Source: Mantamonas sphyraenae STR306 (lineage: Eukaryota; Protista; CRuMs). Taken from it: a stretch of 64,000 nucleotides of DNA. The notes below the pieces were generated by a model. The model searched no databases and was not told the origin of the DNA. It worked only from the letters and a program-made list of their open reading frames with translations. Shown here piece after piece: positions 25,701 through 58,334 of the stretch. Location: positions 372,001-436,000 of the forward strand of contig JAPMXV010000051.1 in the NCBI GenBank assembly GCA_026936335.1, given 5' to 3'. The translations under genes were made by a program, and so were the position numbers. The stretch's first letter is position 1. Each line of letters begins with the position of its first letter.

Positions 25701-25980
25701 CACGTCGTCGGCAGAGCCCGAGTTGCAGTTGAGGCAGGTGGATTTGGACGATGCCGACGAGGAACGACGTCTCGACGCCGCCCTGCGCACCCAGTTTGTC
25801 ACCGAACGTCGGTTTGCCCTTGAGGAACAGCTGGAGTTGTTGGACACTGTGCAGGCCATGCATGCTCGCTTTGCCTCTGTCCGAGCCAAGCAGCGTGCTG
25901 CCAGGCAGGCATCAACGACGTCCACAACAGCCAAGGGCAAGGGCAAGGCAAAGGCAAGGGGAAAGGGCAAGAGAAGGTAA
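22789..25980 (+). CDS. NOC3: Nucleolar complex protein 3
   Basis: DIVPGYRIR, HFNFRNNL, VLEGLAKYSHMINLDF, RIAGFVKR, SLWELASLQSHHHPQV; probable 117-nt intron 23088-23204. Confidence 0.92.
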   Translation: MPAKVKQRNKASNKLASRSSRRTAVRQSQMKERKRAINEQKSKRLNAEASNQVAAELNKPVQLEPSGEDFSFFANYGGFASFLDTLDTQALQQEHESAHRYAGTRPPWQTCTRPGRPSRAPRPTPMLTPGSSFPTRLHSGTKKPPRSERFIYSSQRKRRRDDDSDSDDDSDGDLLVDASSSDDDDDLSDDNDDVQHATHPSAEHSDSDSVYDSEEERGPQLLARAEAKPRSVPTKAKQRASRLPVQTLDGEWRKQQAPTSSTRAAAAAEQEEDNVDDGDDHQVQDDAMDIQQQHDTEDSASVASDTSSQASKDAREEYLEQLARLPAHKLEQTLRQQRHDTLQRKRARIAELSKTILVNPEKHLEELQELQTLCLDEDMAVRKLAIVSIMAVYADIVPGYRIRMLSEQELEVTVSKEVKRLRDYEFGLLNLYQKYLQLLDKLLAAPSKLKKHRARIEATSGNFDLIQKQTHTLALLAVRCMGDLLKRLPHFNFRNNLIAALIPRMDHNTTELPYTEIVFPVVLDAVKNDHNGELSLALVKYIANFVKRKNYKVRVELVQPFLSLNIDDTLGTKIDNPAMNRKKDRKLRGQAKKAAAHVSKKQKRAQKEWQEVEAALKEARADLTLEERQKQQTELLRMVFLTYFRVLKKAPDSPLMPSVLEGLAKYSHMINLDFMNDLLQALKQLVGRPNQPLADVLHCAIAAFRIMANSGDTLNVDLKEFYVALYGRLMDLPANCVQSEHHLLLALRCLELMLSRKHNSLDRIAGFVKRMCIVSTQLSPHAALSLLTVVIQLMRRYPRVQQLLDSDFVALGVYLPELDDDEYCNPFASSLWELASLQSHHHPQVVHFAKELASLAQPSHQELANSSKSAQQQAQINEMVQGDVTRLKVWTEARKLPTRVFKEYDSSTGGFNPPVREPKKHPFLKKLSEEELADDELDASKRRHIRVRRARTPWKPLRAMLMDTEEMGSAVTSSAEPELQLRQVDLDDADEERRLDAALRTQFVTERRFALEEQLELLDTVQAMHARFASVRAKQRAARQASTTSTTAKGKGKAKARGKGKRR

Positions 25981-49917: not shown

Positions 49918-51360
49918 TCATTCGCGCGGGTCCACAATGCCCTCGGCACTGATCTGGTACACAGCTTCACTCTCGGGCAAGTTGGGCGAGTCATAGATCT
50001 TGCATACACGCTGCTCTCCGCGGCCTTTGCGCAAGTACAGTCGCGTCGTGCATGCGTGGGCCATGATGTGCCCTCCGATCGGCTTCTTCGGGTCGCTCAC
50101 AAACATCGCGTTGGCCCCAGGGTCGCTCACCACCTGGTTCGTCACAAACACAGCCACGTTGTACTCCTCAGCAATCTTTGTCAGCCTGCTCAACATCTGC
50201 GCCAGTTTCTGCTGCCGCTCTGCGAGCTCACCGCGTCCCGAATAATCCACACGGAACAGTGCCGTCAGCGAATCGATGATCTGTGTTGCCGTGAATACGT
50301 GTAGCAAGACGTGTGCGTACTCTCTGAGTGTCAGGGTGCCGCTTGTTCTTTGCTCTTTCCCCGTGAAACATACCAACAGACGGAACGGCTCTTCGGCCAT
50401 TTTCGCAGCAACCTGCGTCAGCAGGTCCATCTGCATGTCACTCGTGTGTGCACGTGCATAGATGATGTTGTCAAGCACTGCGTCCGAGTCCACACCGTAC
50501 CTGTCGCAGATCGGCTGAAGACGATCGGGCCGGCTTGCTTGTTGTTTTGCAGTCTCCCCGTGTCAGCCATTGTTCTCTGCCCTCTGCCCTTTCGCGCACA
50601 CGCAAAGTGAAGCTTACAAGGTGCCTTCTGTGTCGATGTATGCCACCTTTCCGTTGCCTCCTCCCATGTCCGTGGGCAACTGGCACGTCACAGCAAGCGT
50701 GTGAGACAACTGCGTCTTGCCCGTGCGGAACTCGCCAAATGCCTCTGTGATTGACATCGTCTCGATGCCTCCGCCCAACAGCTTGTCCAGCTCCCCCGAT
50801 CCAGTCGTCAAGTGCATCACGCGCTTGCGCTTCTGCATCAATTGGTTTCCGGTCACAAAGCCCATGTCGCAGTTCTGCGCCGCATCAGTCAGCATGTTCC
50901 GTAGCCACGTCGCCATGAACATATCACACTCTACTCACCTCCAACTTGCTCATAGCGTCCAGGATCTTGTCTACCTTGGCCTCGGAGATGCCACGGACGC
51001 TACACAGCTTGCGCCTCGTCGTCATTGCGATTGACTGCACCGTGTGCAATCCGGCTTCCTTCAGCTTCTTGATGTCTCCTGCGTTGATGCCCAGGTTCTG
51101 CAGCTCTTCCACAAGGTCAAACATCGCCTCCTCCATCTCTCCTTCCTCTTCTCCCTCTTCCTGGTCTCCTTCTGCTTCATCTTCTTCTTCCTCCTCGCCG
51201 ACCTCCACCAACTCCTCCTCGTGTCTTGAGGTTTGCTCAAATCCTGTGTCAGGATTCCCCCATTTTCCGTTGTTCCCGATAATTCATTTCGAGCAAACCG
51301 GATTTCTCCATCCACCTCGCCCCCCTTCACACACCACACCACACACACTCACTCTGACAT
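49918..51360 (-). CDS. DMC1: Meiotic recombinase DMC1, 5 exons
   Basis: [41 protein letters not shown]; these residues are DMC1-type rather than RAD51-type. Confidence 0.93.
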
Positions 51361-51522
51361 GCTGATGCTCATGATGTTTCTTGCTCTTTGCACTTTGTTC
51401 TTTGTGCGTTGGTTTGTTGGGGTGTTGCTTGTCTGTTTGTGCCGCCGTGGGTGCGCTGCGTTTTGCAGTTGTCGTGTCGTTGCTAGCTTGGCTGGGCAGG
51501 CGCAAGCACATGCGTGTCGCAT

Positions 51523-52912
51523 TTATCGCCGTCCACGCTTCCCTTTGCCACCCTTGCCACCCTTGCGCCCTTTCTTGCCCATTTCTGCAGCAGCTAGGCC
51601 GCCCTTGCCTTTGCGTTCGTTCTCCTGCTGGAACTTGTTGATCGCCTTTTCCATGTGCATCTCGGGTGCTTTGCGCAACACCTTGTCCAACACATGCAGG
51701 TTGCTCTCTTTCTCACCCTTCAGGTTCGACTTTGTCGTGGCATCAAACTGGCGGCGCTTTCCCGGTGTCTTCACCTTCTTCTCTTTGTTCAGCTTGCGGT
51801 CAAAGTTGCCCATGGAGGCTGTGGAGCGCTGTGCTGCGTTGAATTGCACCTCCAGCTCGTCTTTCTTTTTGCCAAACTTGGACGAGCCTTCCAGCTGGGC
51901 CACAAGAGTCGTCGGCAGCGTTTTGCCCTCGCGGTGCAGCTGCTCTTTCACGTTGCGCAGCTCCCGGTCCTTCTGCTTGTCCACCACGGCCTTGCGCTTC
52001 TTGGCCTTTTGGTAAAACGGGTCTGCGTCATCGCCGTCTCCAGGCAGCGACGGAAGCAGCCAGTCGTCCTGTTCGCTGCCAGCTCGTTTGTACCCGTACC
52101 GCGGACGCCATTCCTTTGCCTCTTCGTCCCACACCATCCGCGACCTCTTCTTCTTCCTGATGTTGTTCTCACGTGCAAATTGTTGCCAGCGTGTCTCGGG
52201 CGCCTTCTCTGGCACGCTCTTCTCGCGGGGCACCTGCGTTTTCCCGTCCGGCAACGCCGCCATCACCGCAAAGTCCTCCCCTGTGGTTCACAATCCCCGT
52301 CCCCGTGTGCCCATTTGATGTCAGATATCCGGCATATGTCACCTCTTGCGCCACCTCTGCATTGTGCCCTTCCGTGTAGTCTCCTCTGCAGCCCCGCACA
52401 CCGTGGACTTTGGCATGCATGTGTGCTCCCAAAATCCGCCTTGGTTTCGAAGCACCTCCTCACACGTGCCCTGGCTTCTGCACACACCCGCACACTTACG
52501 TGATGTGGGCAACTCGAACAGTTGGTTCACCAGCTGCTGCGTCATCCAGCGCGCATGCTTCAGGATTACACCCTCGCGCTTCGATCTGCGTCGCGTGCAC
52601 AGGTGTGAGTCTCATTCCTATGGTGCCTCGCTTGTGCTTCTTCCACATGCAACCTACTTCATGGCGCGTGGGTCCATGGCCGTGCCGTAGCTAGCCATCA
52701 GGTTGCCCAGGTCGAAATCGATGTCCTCCGTCAGCATCTCGCTGTTTGTGGTGAATTCCCAGGATGTCAGATCGAGCCCAACCACACACTTTCCCGCTCT
52801 GCTACTCGCACAGCTTCACGCACCTGCTCCCACTGCTCTGTGCCTTTTGTTTGCTGGCTGCCAACAGTTCTCTTGCATCAAGGACTTCATTCTCACTGTC
52901 ACTGTCGCTCAT
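51523..52912 (-). CDS. RRS1: Ribosome biogenesis regulator RRS1, 4 exons
   Basis: FDLGNL, QQLVNQLFELP, PREK, TRWQQFA, WRPRYGYK, STASMGNFD. First exon MSDSDSENEVLDARELL splices in frame via GTGCGT..CTGAC..CAG (52823-52743). Confidence 0.92.
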
Positions 52913-55900
52913 CGCCGGGTGTTTTTCTTCTTGCGCCTGCGCGCAATGCGTCGTCCAGACATCTGTGCCTCGGACGCCTTGGGAAACACGCCACTCTCAG
53001 CAGAGCCCACATTGCCTCCTGCGCCAAACCTCACTGGCGCCGGACTCCTTCCGCTGCCCCTGTCTCCGCTGCGTGGGCTCGACCCGCTCGAACGATTGCC
53101 GAAGCGGCCTCCCCCACTGGAGAAGCGTCCTCCGCTGCTTGTCCTACGTCCCGACCGTGGGCTCTCATTGTCCATGTCTGCCTCCATCCCTCCGTCATCG
53201 TCATCCGATCCGCGACGCGACGAGAAGCGCCCGCTGCCTCCGCCGAACCGTCCGCCCCCCCGCGGGCTGTCTTCGCTCGCCAGGCTGCTGCTTGTGTCGT
53301 TACGTGTGCGGAAACGCCCTCCAAAGCGTCCTCCCGATCCCCTGCCCTTATCCTCATCCTCCTCGTCCTTGTCGCTTCGACGCGAGCTTCCCGCACGCGC
53401 CCCAAAGCGTCCCCCGCGCTTGCTGCTACCCTTGTCCTCCTCCTCCTCCTCCTCGCTTCCTCGTCGCGACTTGCCACCGAATCGCCCTCCACCTGTTCGC
53501 CTGCTCGGCGTCTCCTCCTCCTCATCCGCAGAGGCCTTGCGCACCGTACGAGAGCCAAAGCGCCCACGTCGCTCCTCTCCTTCGTCTTTGGATCCTCCCG
53601 CACGTTCTGACAGGCTCTTGTTCACACTGGGCGACTTGGGAAGGCCGCTCTTTGACCCTCCGAATCGCACGGGTCCGCTGGCCGCCGCACGTGCCTTTCT
53701 GCTGCTCCTGCTCGCTTCCTCCTCCTCATCGTCCCCACGCGCCTTGACCTTGCGCGATCCGAACAGGATTGGCTCCGAAGAAGTTGTGCGTGTCCTCGAT
53801 CGTCCTCCAGGCGCCGAGAACGCGTGCGCGCCCTTCTCCTCCTCCTTGTTCTCCTCCCCCTTGCTCTCGGGCTTCTCCTGCTTCTCCTCCTTCTCCTTAT
53901 CCCCACTGCGACGTCCAAAGCGTCCTCGTGAAGGCTTCGACGCCGTGTCTTCCTCCTTCGTGGCTGCAGCGCCGTCACTTGTGGTCTCTTGGCGCACTTT
54001 CCCGAAGCGCGGCTTAAAGGCGCCACCGCTCTTGGGCGTGGACACCTCCTCGGCCTTCTTTTCTGTCACTTCCTCCGCATCCTCCTTGTCTTTGTTCTCT
54101 GTGCGTCGCACCTTGCCAAACCGCGATGTCTTTGTCGCAGATCCGCTGTCTTTTGAAGACGACGTGCTTGCATCGTTCTCATCCCCTTTCTTTTCCTTGT
54201 CGCTCTCTTTCCCTGCGTCCTCTTCTTTGCTCGCACGCATCATGGCTGCCGAGCGGAACTTTCGACGAGGCGTCGTCTTTTCCTTGTCCTTGTCCCCCTC
54301 TGTCTCACCTCCTTTCTCTGTCTCCTTCTTCTCCTCCTCCTTCCCCTCCTTCTCCTTCGATGCGCTGCCCAGCGACCGTTTGCTGAACAGCTGGCGAGCC
54401 TTGCGTTCCTTGCCCTCATCCTCCTTGTCGTTCTTGTCGTCTGACTCCTTTGTCGCTTTGTTCTCGCTGCCGGGCGTGCTTGCCTCTGCGCCCTTCTTGC
54501 CAAACCGTCCACGTCCCGCAAACCTGCTCTTCGGCGTCTCTTCCTTTCCCGTGTCCGTCCTGCTGTTAGTATCTGTGTCTGCCTTGGATCCTCCTTCGGT
54601 GCTCGCTGCATCCGCTGGCTTCTCGTCGGAGGGCTTCTTGCCAAAGCGGCTGCGTCCAAACTTGGCCTTGGCCGCTTTCTCCTTGTCTTCACCCTCTGTC
54701 GCACTGCTTGTGTCTGCATCGACACCCGAAGTGGTGGGCACGGTGACGCTTGTGCTGCTCGTTGCATCCTTCCCTCCCTCGGCGCTCTTCTTTGTTCGAA
54801 TCGCTCCGAAGCGCGAGGTCTTTTTGGGCGTGCTTGTTGCCTCATTATCGTTGCCCTCTTTGGTGTCTGCTGCTGCCTTTCCATCCACAGCTTCCTTGGT
54901 TGCCTCTTCGGTTGCATCCGCCTCGATCACTGATGCATTGCTGCGCTTCATGCCAAATTTGCGCTTGGGTTTGCTTTGCCCATCGTCAGAGCTCTCTGTG
55001 GCCTTGGACACCTCTGCACTGGCTGCGCTGGCGTCGTTGGCGGAGGCGGACGAGTCTTCTCCGGCGTTCTTGCGTTTGCCGAAACGTGATCTGCCCATTG
55101 GGTTTCTCCTGCTCGTTGGTTCCCGCTGCCTCGCCTTCCGCGTTCTCCTGGCTGGCGGTAGTGGTAGCAATAGCAGACGAGGTTGTGTTTGCAGGCGTTC
55201 CCTGCTCCGACGGTGCGGCCGTTTCTGTCACGTTGCCCTTGCGTGCAAACAACGTTCGTCGCGTCTGCTCGCTTTCACTGGCCAACTCGGTTGCCTTGCC
55301 TGCTGCCACCTTTCCGAATCGCTTCTTTTCAGGCTTGCTACTGCTCTCGGTGCTTGTGCTTGTGCTTGTGCTTGTGCTTGTGCTTGTGGTGGTGGCGCTA
55401 CCTTCCTTTGCAGCTGTGGTTGCATCAACCGCAGAGCTTGTGCTGCTGCTACTTGATGCAGGTTGCGACGACTTGGATGCAGCCAGTGTGATGCGTGCCT
55501 TCTTGCTCGTTTGTGTCTCTTGTGTGTCTGCACCGGCCTCGCTGGCCCCTTCCATGTCAGCGTTTTTGTCAGCCGGAGCCAGATCCGAGGCCGAGGTGGC
55601 TGAGACGCCGCCGCTGCTGGGCTCTTCCAGCTCCACAGCGGGGCGCTTGCGTGTCTCTGTCTCCTGAGGAGGCTCTGGCACTTCGGGCAGGATGTGTCGT
55701 GCCTTGACGGCCTTGATGAGCGACACATGCCTTGCGGCGGGGCGCTGCTGTGTGGGGGTGGCTTCTTCGCGGATGGTGTCAAAGAACTTGGCGTTGGGCG
55801 CAGGCATGCTTGCCTTGGCCTTGCTCACCAGGCTCTGTGCGGCCGCCTGTGCGCGTTCGGAGTTTGCTGCCGCGTCATCCTCAGCGGCAGAAAGGGCGGC

Positions 55901-56506
55901 TTGCTGCTCATATGCACTGCTCGTGTTCTGCTCAATCATGTAGTATGTGTCCGCCAAAGTTGCAGGGCGCATTTTCATGGCGGAGAGTGAGGTTCGAGGG
56001 GGAACGAGCCCTGACGACGACGACGAAGACGATGAAGATGAAGATGTGCGCACAGCTTGCTCCGAAAGAGGGTCCCCTGCATGGAAGGAGCTGTGCGGGG
56101 TCAACGGTTGCCTGCGCGCGTACTGGTAGACGCTGCTACCCGGAGCGACGAGTCGCGACGCACTCATGGAACCAGCCTTGCGTGCATCTCGCAGCGGCGA
56201 AGGCATGTGTGCCAGCGTATGCAGCAGGCGTGTGGTGTGTGTACTTGCGTTGGGCAGAGGCATGTCTCGTCCACCCACGCGCTGCATGCCTGCATGACGT
56301 TTGTTGCTTGGGTAAGCCTGCACGTTTGGCGTTTGCACGTGCACGCCATCTCCGCCGTCGATTGGTCCGTCACGTCCGTATGCCTGGTCCCCAGGTGTGG
56401 CCATGAGCATGCTTTGCTCTGCTTGCATGCTCGGCGAGCGAGCTCGTTTGCGCGCTCCAGTGCTTTGAACAAGCGGTGTTGCTTGTTCGACTTGGCCAAC
56501 CACCGC

Positions 56507-56551
<45 letters not shown>

Positions 56552-57293
56552 ACTGATATAATCGTGTGCCGACCGGCCCCCGTATGTGCTTGTGTATGGC
56601 GAGCGCAATTGTGTGCGCAGTTTGGTGCGTCTGCGTACGGGCCGGCCCGAGCTCAGTGGCGTTTGTGCCAGCATGGATGAGCCCTGTTCAGACGATGCAC
56701 CATTGGCACCCCAGCCGCCCCGCAGCTGTTGTGCGCCTCCTTGCCATTTCTCGGCTGTGCGCGAAGACATGGCTGGCGACGTGTCAAGCGAAACGGAGCG
56801 CATGGTCCGTCGCATTCCGCCCCCGTTGCTCTCGCCCACAGGCATGTTCACCACGCGGCCACCAGACACCACGCGTCCATTGCTGGTGTCTCCCCTCGGA
56901 CTGCGACTGGTGCTGGGATGCGACGTGTCGCTGCCTCCATGCAGCTCCTGGGCCTCCGCGTCCTGTCCGCCGATCAGCCTCCAGGCGCTTCCCACAAAGC
57001 CCTTCAATGTGTCGATCAACAGCGACCCGCTGCTTTCCGTTTGCTCTGCCTGCTCCTCCCCGTGCTCCAACTGTTTGCCACAGACCATGTGCCCTCTTGT
57101 GTCAGTCCGCGACTCTTGCTTGGTGCTCCTGCCGTCTCGTGCATTTTTTTGGGCGCGCACAACCACCTCCGGTCACGCTTCCACTCACCTGGCCAGACAT
57201 TCGTCCGTTTGTACGCCGACGTGCTGCCATTGCATACGGATGCGTCATAGCAGCCGACGTCGAGTGTCCTCTGTTGACCCGTGCTTTGCCCAT
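52909..57293 (-). CDS. NUP153: Nuclear basket nucleoporin NUP153/Nup1-like with RFG repeats; frame break near 55102
   Basis: SPYTSTYGG and TTRLLHTLAHMPSPLRDARK resemble NUP153 TTYGG and RRILQSLEKMSSPLADAKR; many FG dipeptides; basic end GRRIARRRKK; intron 57188-57071. Confidence 0.72.
55350..55387 (-). repeat. (GTGCTT)n hexamer encoding (Thr-Ser)n in the NUP153-like gene
   Basis: Read directly. Confidence 0.85.
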
Positions 57294-57351: not shown

Positions 57352-58334
57352 ATGTCCAGCACCGATTCCGGATCAGACGGCAAGCAGGCTTCCCTCCTGC
57401 TTGCCCGCCAGCTCAAGGGTCTGTTTTACTTCCATAATGCATCCTCCATGGTTTCCGCAGGCCTGCCCTCTGTCTCGTTTTCCGTTCTGATCAACGCCCG
57501 CCCTGACACTCGGCGTTTTGGCCCTCCCCCAAATGCCGCCTTGCCTCCCCACAGAGCTGACCAAGAACCCCGTCGAGGGTTTCTCTGCAGGGCTTGTCGA
57601 CGATGACAACCTGTTTGAATGGGACTTGATGATCATCGGCCCGCCCGACACGCTCTAGTGCGTTTTTTCCCTCTCCCGATCCACAAAGTGCTCCACGCTT
57701 GCACAGGTCTTTGGACATCATTCCCACCTCGTCCTGTTTCCGTGGCGTCTCCCTACATCTGGAGGGTTCCCATTACCTGCTCTGCTGACTCTGAGTACCT
57801 CTCCTTGGGTGTGCCTCTTTCCAGCGAGGGCGGCTATTTCAAGGCCACCCTCTCCTTCCCGCAGGATTACCCCATCATGCCACCCACAATGACCTTCACC
57901 TCGGACATGTGGCACCCCAACATCTACGAGAACGGCAAAGTGTGCATCTCCATCCTCCATCCGCCCGGAGACGATGAGTGGGGCTATGAGGACAGGTGCG
58001 TTTTCCCAAGAGCCCGCCACTTTCCGCACCCGCCTTCCAACCCCGCACCCGCCTTTCACCCCCGTTTCCACCTTGTCCCATGCGTCCCTTGCACTGTCCC
58101 TTGCTCATGGCGCTCATCCACACAACCTTGTACACGACCCTTTTGCTCAGCTCTGAGCGCTGGCTGCCCATCCACACCGTCGAGAGCATCCTGCTGTCGG
58201 TCATCTCCATGCTCAGCAACCCCAACGACGAGAGTCCCGCCAACATCGACGCGGCCAAGGAGTGGCGCGAGGACTACAAATCCTTCAAGAAGAAGGTCGC
58301 CAAGACCGTGCGCAAGTCCCAGGACGATCTCTAA
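57352..58334 (+). CDS. UBE2G1: Ubiquitin-conjugating enzyme E2 G1/Ubc7, 4 exons
   Basis: [58 protein letters not shown]. Confidence 0.93.

Follow-up and report, generated by a model that had tools for sequence, protein, structure and literature searches.

Can the stop codon of one nuclear gene share its letters with the start codon of the next, so that ribosomes finishing the first protein restart on the same messenger RNA (mRNA) to make the second, or does such an overlap merely reflect two independent genes that have been pressed together? The question is raised by a four-letter junction in a window of 64,000 nucleotides (nt) from Mantamonas sphyraenae STR306 (contig JAPMXV010000051.1, positions 372,001 to 436,000 of the forward strand; coordinates below are those of this window unless stated otherwise). 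There, on the minus strand, the open reading frame (ORF) of a nucleoporin-like gene ends in the letters ATGA, the first three of which may be the start codon of RRS1. An earlier, sequence-only reading of the window had offered two explanations: a bicistronic mRNA with reinitiation, or promoter and polyadenylation signals buried in the neighbouring coding sequences.

We consider it quite likely that the two genes give rise to separate mRNAs, the ends of which abut or overlap, and that they are expressed without translational coupling in a hyper-compact genome. The junction is most likely an incidental outcome of gene crowding, possibly without any overlap of the two ORFs. Of the two earlier explanations, the second is the one that agrees with our findings, namely a candidate polyadenylation signal inside the proposed first exon of RRS1 and the general crowding of 3' ends.

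The junction and the 3' end of the upstream gene

The overlap is present in the letters just as it had been described. In the minus-strand context CGGCG-ATGA-GCGAC (...AAAAACACCCGGCG-ATGA-GCGACAGTGAC...), ATG 52912-52910 overlaps TGA 52911-52909. This TGA closes a 753-codon ORF (52909-55170), and from the ATG a frame of 29 codons (MSDSDSENEVLDARELLAASKQKAQSSGS) and 2 further nt extends up to a GTGCGT donor at 52823-52818. The stop looks genuine, since the codon-bias score of the ORF is 198 and a match to the tail of NUP50 nearly reaches the stop. When compared with the Pfam NUP50 profile (PF08911), the last 30 residues of the ORF, which ends in ...SGRRIARRRKKKNTRR*, gave E=6e-4 and 20.8 bits, under the 22.5-bit cut-off, and the match stops 3 residues short of the TGA. 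The standing of the ATG is less clear, and the chances that 52912 is the start codon of RRS1 are roughly balanced. The further claim that no intergenic space separates the genes could not be confirmed, as it is valid only if the first exon of RRS1 is translated. A second in-frame ATG exists at 52737-52735, and an RRS1 that starts there would be separated from its neighbour by a spacer of 171 nt, which is ordinary for this genome.

A motif that recurs behind stop codons suggests where the upstream mRNA ends. The statistics given here and below come from 264 kb of the same contig (the window and the adjoining 200 kb, or about 1% of the genome), in which ORFs were called with a simple codon-bias model trained on the long ORFs of these 264 kb. 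AATGAA is the leading hexamer among those enriched over the 100 nt behind stops, being found in 17 of 97 gene tails versus 1.6 expected (p=7e-13); AATGGA, AATGCA and ATGAAA come next. In its degenerate form, AATG[AGC]A, the motif lies between -2 and +60 of the stop in 27 of the 97 tails and in 1 of 97 control windows placed within coding sequence. The shorter string AATG accumulates from -10 to +50 around stops and peaks in the 0-9 and 20-29 bins; per strand, AATGAA has a background frequency of 0.142 per kb, which corresponds to 0.009 per 60 nt. Judging from these positions and from its resemblance to variants of AAUAAA, the most likely explanation is that AATGAA is a polyadenylation signal, a candidate lineage-specific one, and that the 3' untranslated regions (UTRs) are very short.

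At the junction, an AATGAA is found at 52891-52886. Its distance of 20 nt from the nucleoporin-like stop falls into one of the two peak bins, and if the first exon of RRS1 were translated, the same letters would read Asn8-Glu9. The nucleoporin-like gene probably has its own poly(A) site. As the distance between signal and cleavage site is usually 10-30 nt, we infer that its mRNA ends at about 52875-52855. Separate polyadenylation of this mRNA, which the sequence-only reading had regarded as incompatible with a bicistron, is thus seen as a motif at +20 and not as reads.

The spacing of genes in this genome is consistent with such an arrangement. According to the accessible part of the genome paper, the assembly comprises 25.06 Mb in 78 contigs with a guanine plus cytosine (GC) content of 59.19%, and it holds 9,416 'mostly mono-exonic' genes that average 2,282 bp (PMC10492846); in the assembly we counted 25,061,354 bases in 78 contigs. 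The product of gene number and mean length means that genes take up about 86% of the genome, and spacers must therefore be tiny. For convergent genes, the median gap from stop to stop is about 55 nt and the smallest is -14, and 13 of 22 gaps are 85 nt or shorter. With a signal 0-40 nt after the stop and a median gap of this size, 3' ends must often run into the neighbouring gene, and, as judged from these distances, the 3' ends of convergent neighbours must often overlap on opposite strands. On the minus strand, about 150 nt separate the RRS1 stop from the first candidate ATG of the next gene, DMC1. On this measure, the spacers are too short to hold both UTRs and signals, which is the mark of overlapping transcription units.

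Intergenic distances, overlaps and polycistrons are not mentioned in the accessible part of the genome paper (PMC10492846), and our literature search found nothing on transcript structure in Mantamonas beyond that paper. As separate observations from the window, the stops of the convergent pairs at 25980/26008 and 16976/17012 lie 27 and 35 nt apart.

Two candidate start codons of RRS1

The identification of the downstream gene as RRS1 in the sequence-only reading was borne out. Its last exon matches the Pfam RRS1 profile (PF04939) with E=7.3e-30 and 104 bits against a cut-off of 25 bits. The gene contains the conserved DLGNL block, and a whole-genome scan found one locus, so that its likeness to the RRS1 family comprises profile match, DLGNL block and single copy. 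The closest database protein is RRS1 of Mantamonas plastica, to residues 42-289 of which the last exon is 61% identical. Exon 3 is 62% identical to the same protein over 26 residues (E=1e-11), the end of exon 2 matches its N-terminus, and identity to this protein amounts to 61-64%; the exons were searched one by one, not as a joined model. By arithmetic on the coordinates, the four exons total 1,014 nt, or 338 codons (Table 1). The metagenome loci that were found contain distant RRS1 relatives only.

Unlike the DLGNL block, the N-terminal extension that precedes it shows no conservation among homologues. It measures 6-31 residues in the four homologues compared, and homology therefore cannot decide between ATG 52912 and ATG 52737. 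The protein of M. plastica is uninformative on exon 1, because its predicted ORF begins at the Met of NLMASYG, after the DLGNL block. An in-frame stop lies upstream of this Met, and this arrangement points to an intron left unspliced or to a fused contig.

Table 1. Features at and around the junction between the nucleoporin-like gene and RRS1 (window coordinates)
Feature	Position	Strand	Basis or remark
N-terminal part of nucleoporin-like gene, start ATG 57248-57246	54986..57248	-	sequence reading, ORF list
C-terminal ORF of nucleoporin-like gene, including TGA	52909..55170	-	ORF list, codon-bias score 198
Last ATG in nucleoporin frame, 17 codons before TGA	52960..52962	-	sequence scan
ATGA, nucleoporin-like stop overlapping candidate RRS1 start	52909..52912	-	read from sequence
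RRS1 proposed exon 1, 89 nt (29 codons + 2 nt), candidate coding	52824..52912	-	open frame
AATGAA, candidate polyadenylation signal of nucleoporin-like gene	52886..52891	-	+20 nt past stop, inside exon 1
Candidate intron, 82 nt	52742..52823	-	GTGCGT 52823-52818, CTGAC 52770-52766, CAG 52744-52742
RRS1 exon 2 (...EMLTEDIDFDLGNLMASYGTAMDPRAM...), holds ATG 52737-52735 and DLGNL block	52658..52741	-	translation, codon score 13.6
RRS1 exon 3 (SKREGVILKHARWMTQQLVNQLFELPTS)	52500..52585	-	boundaries from sequence; M. plastica match
RRS1 last exon, including TAA 51525-51523	51523..52280	-	Pfam PF04939

Exons 1 and 2 would be joined by splicing. The in-frame GTGCGT/CTGAC/CAG layout noticed earlier is present, and its boundaries needed a small correction, to 52823-52742 (82 nt) instead of 52823-52743. 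The spacer between CTGAC and the acceptor is 22 nt long and free of AG. Exon 2 continues from 52741 through a split codon, AG/C, into EMLTEDIDFDLGNL in frame, and the second in-frame ATG (MLTED) follows 4 nt beyond the acceptor.

The GT..CTGAC..AG pattern as such does not discriminate, as it occurs 105-117 times per 528 kb in a reversed control and 100-135 times in the real sequence. It could hence be a chance match, in which case RRS1 would have no intron here, transcription would begin within the 171-nt spacer, translation would begin at ATG 52737 and the ATGA would be coincidental. A spacer of that size is typical of the region, given the approximately 150 nt between RRS1 and DMC1, and the GC content of exon 1 (51%) is also in line with non-coding sequence. 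What speaks for a real intron is the placement of CTGAC relative to genes. In 27 of 59 genes versus 4.9 expected, it precedes the first ATG of the main ORF by no more than 100 nt, a fivefold enrichment, from which we estimate that roughly four-fifths of such sites are genuine branch sites. By the same measure, 5'-proximal introns are very common in this genome, and short coding first exons are predicted in the nucleoporin-like gene and in a neighbouring gene for an E2 ubiquitin-conjugating enzyme. Besides, the AG-free spacer and the CAG acceptor of the RRS1 candidate fit the local intron pattern. Without splicing, ATGs 52890 and 52878 would open upstream ORFs of 24 and 20 codons unless transcription started no more than about 140 nt from 52737. 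Taken together, the 82-nt intron is very probably real, and a gene without it is unlikely.

A similar layout is seen in a tandem family of five genes on the minus strand of the same contig (L005:8915 to L007:647, window coordinates about -161085 to -149353). Each junction in this family consists of a TGA with AATGGA, 38 nt, a GTGAGA donor, an intron of about 130 nt with CTGAC, an acceptor, 8 nt and an ATG. Read in this way, the layout is that of a 5'-UTR intron placed directly behind the 3' signal of the upstream gene, and the first exon must be either tiny or overlapping with the 3' end of that gene.

Whether exon 1 of RRS1 is translated is a more delicate matter. The exon is open and in register with exon 2, for which we estimate a chance of about 1 in 4-5. 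Its codon log-odds of 6.86 compare with a mean of 4.3 for windows that span codons 1-29 of confident genes and 7.6 for inner windows, but the same value is near the 90th percentile of non-coding stretches that are open from an ATG (mean -0.6). Several features count against coding. The GC content of exon 1 is 51% versus 55% for the intron, the exon shows no similarity to the N-termini of the four RRS1 homologues, and the AATGAA of the neighbouring gene is inside it. Furthermore, a Met is found 4 nt past the acceptor, where the five-copy family places its start codon, and if exon 1 were coding, the Met at 52737 would have to be a coincidence. Pfam gave no match with exons 1 and 2 alone, both of which are too short. 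The context of start codons in this genome is too noisy to tell one ATG from the other; its sole prominent feature is a G at +4, which is absent from both. An apparent resemblance of ELLAASKQ in exon 1 to the N-terminus of human RRS1 was dropped as coincidence, since it is absent from the four homologues. The predicted proteins would begin with (M)SDSDSENEVLDAR and (M)LTEDIDFDLGNL for the two candidate starts. On this evidence, the arguments for and against a coding exon 1 are about evenly poised.

The following mechanism would account for these features. The nucleoporin-like gene would end at TGA 52911-52909 and, 20 nt beyond it, carry an AATGAA of its own as 3'-end signal. RRS1 would have a short leader of its own with the 5'-proximal 82-nt intron and would be translated by normal cap-dependent scanning, so that the choice of ATG would be set only by the position at which transcription starts. 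With a transcription start at 52961-52913, in the final 50 nt of the nucleoporin ORF, scanning ribosomes would meet AUG 52912 first, the ORFs would overlap by 4 nt and the protein would have 338 amino acids (aa). With a start at 52877-52824, behind the poly(A) site of the neighbour, exon 1 would be a non-coding leader, and translation from 52737 would give 307 aa. If transcription began earlier than that, ATGs 52890 and 52878 would open an upstream ORF, closed in the spliced mRNA by TGA 52733-52731. An RRS1 mRNA with a start still further upstream would include ATG 52962, which amounts to an upstream ORF of 17 codons ending on the ATGA. From the features at hand, we infer that splicing takes place and that 52912 and 52737 have comparable chances of being the ATG that is used.

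An ambiguous start is also seen in DMC1 (51350-51372, minus strand). Its 20-nt mini-exon with the ATG joins the next exon in frame only via an AAG acceptor, and the next in-frame ATG (MEEAMFDL) is 33 codons into exon 2, an ambiguity like that of RRS1.

ATGA junctions, frame breaks and the possibility of a shared mRNA

If ATGA overlaps served to couple translation in this genome, more of them would be expected at stops than chance provides. In 85 high-scoring ORFs, the base before TGA is G in 42 cases, A in 17, T in 16 and C in 10. The 17 cases with A compare with 12.3 expected from a third-position A content of 14.5% (p=0.10), which is no enrichment. Only two of these 17 ATGA stops are followed by a long, clearly coding ORF in the frame of the ATG. 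One of them, on the plus strand at L003:596-599 (about position 182,596 of the contig), has a BCDHK_Adom3 match upstream and a HATPase_c match downstream; by its domain content, this junction is a frame break inside a single PDK/BCKDK-like kinase gene. As this split kinase gene demonstrates, an ATGA junction in this assembly can be artefactual. At the other, on the minus strand at L005:3801-3804, an ORF of 574 codons with no Pfam match joins an ORF of 558 codons with a weak HEAT-repeat match, and this may be a genuine overlap or a single large gene whose frame is broken. The 3'-end motif is a further source of ATGA, as its TGA is sometimes shared with the stop codon (AATGA) and several of the ATGA stops are AATGA. 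Such junctions can hence have three sources, namely chance (about one-fifth of TGA stops), the AATGA motif and frame breaks. In the 264 kb covered, -4 overlaps show no excess, and there is no sign of selection for them in this sample.

The nucleoporin-like gene has a frame break of its own. Near 55098-55110 on the minus strand, a 726-codon ORF that ends at TGA 54986 overlaps the 753-codon ORF, open from 55170, in a different frame. Motifs of the KRFGK type are common to both halves, which are therefore probably one gene with a single-base assembly error or a frameshift; two overlapping genes could be another cause. At its predicted 5' end, a 60-nt coding first exon and an intron with GTGAGT...CTGAC...CAG precede the 726-codon ORF. 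The start of this gene, ATG 57248-57246 on the minus strand, lies head-to-head with that of the E2 gene, ATG 57352-57354 on the plus strand, at a distance of 103 nt.

As to the identity of the upstream gene, phmmer found no homologues of the C-terminal ORF among 1.8 billion representatives and none in the PDB. The N-terminal part had none in a word-indexed search of a set of 5.8 billion proteins and likewise none in the PDB. The C-terminal ORF of 753 residues contains 18 phenylalanine-glycine (FG) dipeptides, 17 of them as RFG or KFG. These repeats agree with the earlier label NUP153-like, whereas homology to NUP153, Nup1 or NUP50 is limited to the sub-threshold match with the tail of NUP50. 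On the strength of its residues, the gene can reasonably be called nucleoporin-like, and NUP153-like is a plausible guess.

These properties of the upstream gene bear directly on the possibility of a bicistronic nucleoporin-RRS1 mRNA, on which ribosomes would reinitiate at the AUG that overlaps the UGA, perhaps as part of a genome-wide ATGA system. Both the ATGA overlap and an exon 1 in frame exist in the sequence, the genes are on the same strand and, if exon 1 is coding, no spacer separates them. In addition, the RRS1 of M. plastica (EukProt EP00003) is the second ORF, labelled '.p2', on its transcript contig (Trinity DN4343_c0_g1_i4), which must thus have at least one further predicted ORF; the best match of DMC1 is likewise a Trinity-assembled ORF from EukProt, on a contig with a different number. 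However, the upstream cistron would be about 4.3 kb long and contain 61 ATG triplets (from 57248 to 52912), and these rule out leaky scanning. Eukaryotic ribosomes reinitiate inefficiently once they have translated a very long ORF, and TGGGA, motif 1 of the termination upstream ribosomal binding site (TURBS), is not found within 120 nt upstream of 52912. A strong 3'-end motif stands 20 nt past the stop, and ATGA is not enriched at stops, with one of the two best cases being a frame break and the other possibly one. Moreover, a spacer of about 150 nt is present at the next junction, that of RRS1 and DMC1. We found no support for reinitiation at this junction and regard a bicistronic mRNA as decidedly improbable. 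More doubtful still is the general form of this idea, in which some adjacent nuclear genes of Mantamonas would share a single mRNA and ribosomes terminating at UGA would restart at ATGA junctions. If true, a eukaryotic lineage close to the root of Amorphea would have translational coupling behind a very long ORF.

Several points weigh against separate mRNAs as we propose them. The reading of AATGAA as a polyadenylation signal draws on the statistics of its position. The sample of 264 kb with ORF calls of our own making could miss a modest genome-wide excess of -4 overlaps, and the '.p2' label of M. plastica RRS1 leaves room for multi-gene transcripts in the genus.

Polycistronic transcription resolved by processing, for instance by trans-splicing of a spliced leader onto CAG 52744-52742 with a start at ATG 52737, would be in keeping with the frequent CTGAC...AG just upstream of starts (27/59), the extremely short spacers and the ATG 4 nt past the acceptor, but it is the least credible explanation of all, as a good cis donor, GTGCGT, is available at a typical distance (82 nt), the tandem family has cis donors too (GTGAGA) and no spliced leader appears in the accessible part of the genome paper (PMC10492846).

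Comparison with known compact and coupled systems

Should RRS1 transcription begin within the nucleoporin ORF, this free-living eukaryote would provide a clean case of coding sequence that also holds promoter and terminator functions. Of greater value than the junction, in our opinion, are the AATGAA motif, the 5'-proximal introns and frame breaks with the look of overlaps. Together with compaction, the 3' motif, the CTGAC introns and the frame breaks bear on the annotation of the first CRuMs genome.

The same four-letter overlap of stop and start is familiar from bacterial operons and from RNA viruses (calicivirus TURBS, influenza B M2), in which termination-reinitiation takes place at AUGA or UAAUG. 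Viral termination-reinitiation needs an upstream UGGGA complementary to 18S rRNA, some 40-80 nt before the restart AUG, and the Mantamonas junction differs in lacking this motif in the 120 nt upstream. Translational coupling in bacteria shows as genome-wide peaks of the stop-to-start distance at -4 and -1. Unlike bacterial operons, the 264 kb of Mantamonas have no excess at -4.

A closer parallel in terms of nuclear genes is offered by the polycistrons of green algae (Chlamydomonas and Chromochloris), in which two ORFs also lie on one strand with a very short distance or none between them. Their upstream ORFs are small (median lengths 444-600 nt; PMC7896298), and leaky scanning best accounts for the way in which the second ORF is translated (PMC7896298; PMC11291117). 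In Mantamonas, by contrast, the upstream ORF is about 4.3 kb long, contains 61 ATGs and has its own 3'-end motif past the stop.

The best match is found among compacted eukaryotic genomes. In microsporidia (Encephalitozoon cuniculi) and in nucleomorphs, spacers are likewise tens of nt long, 3' signals and probably also start sites are located inside neighbouring genes, and each gene is translated from its own first AUG. We think that the junction of the nucleoporin-like gene and RRS1 works in the same way as these overlapping transcription units. The difference lies in the organism and in its introns: M. sphyraenae is no reduced parasite or endosymbiont but a free-living, deep-branching CRuMs flagellate whose genome measures 25 Mb, it has retained spliceosomal introns, which are often 5'-proximal, and the overlap of its transcripts is deduced here from sequence. 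In summary, the locus is a further example of crowded, overlapping transcription units as predicted from its gene spacing and signals, here in a free-living, deep-branching protist.

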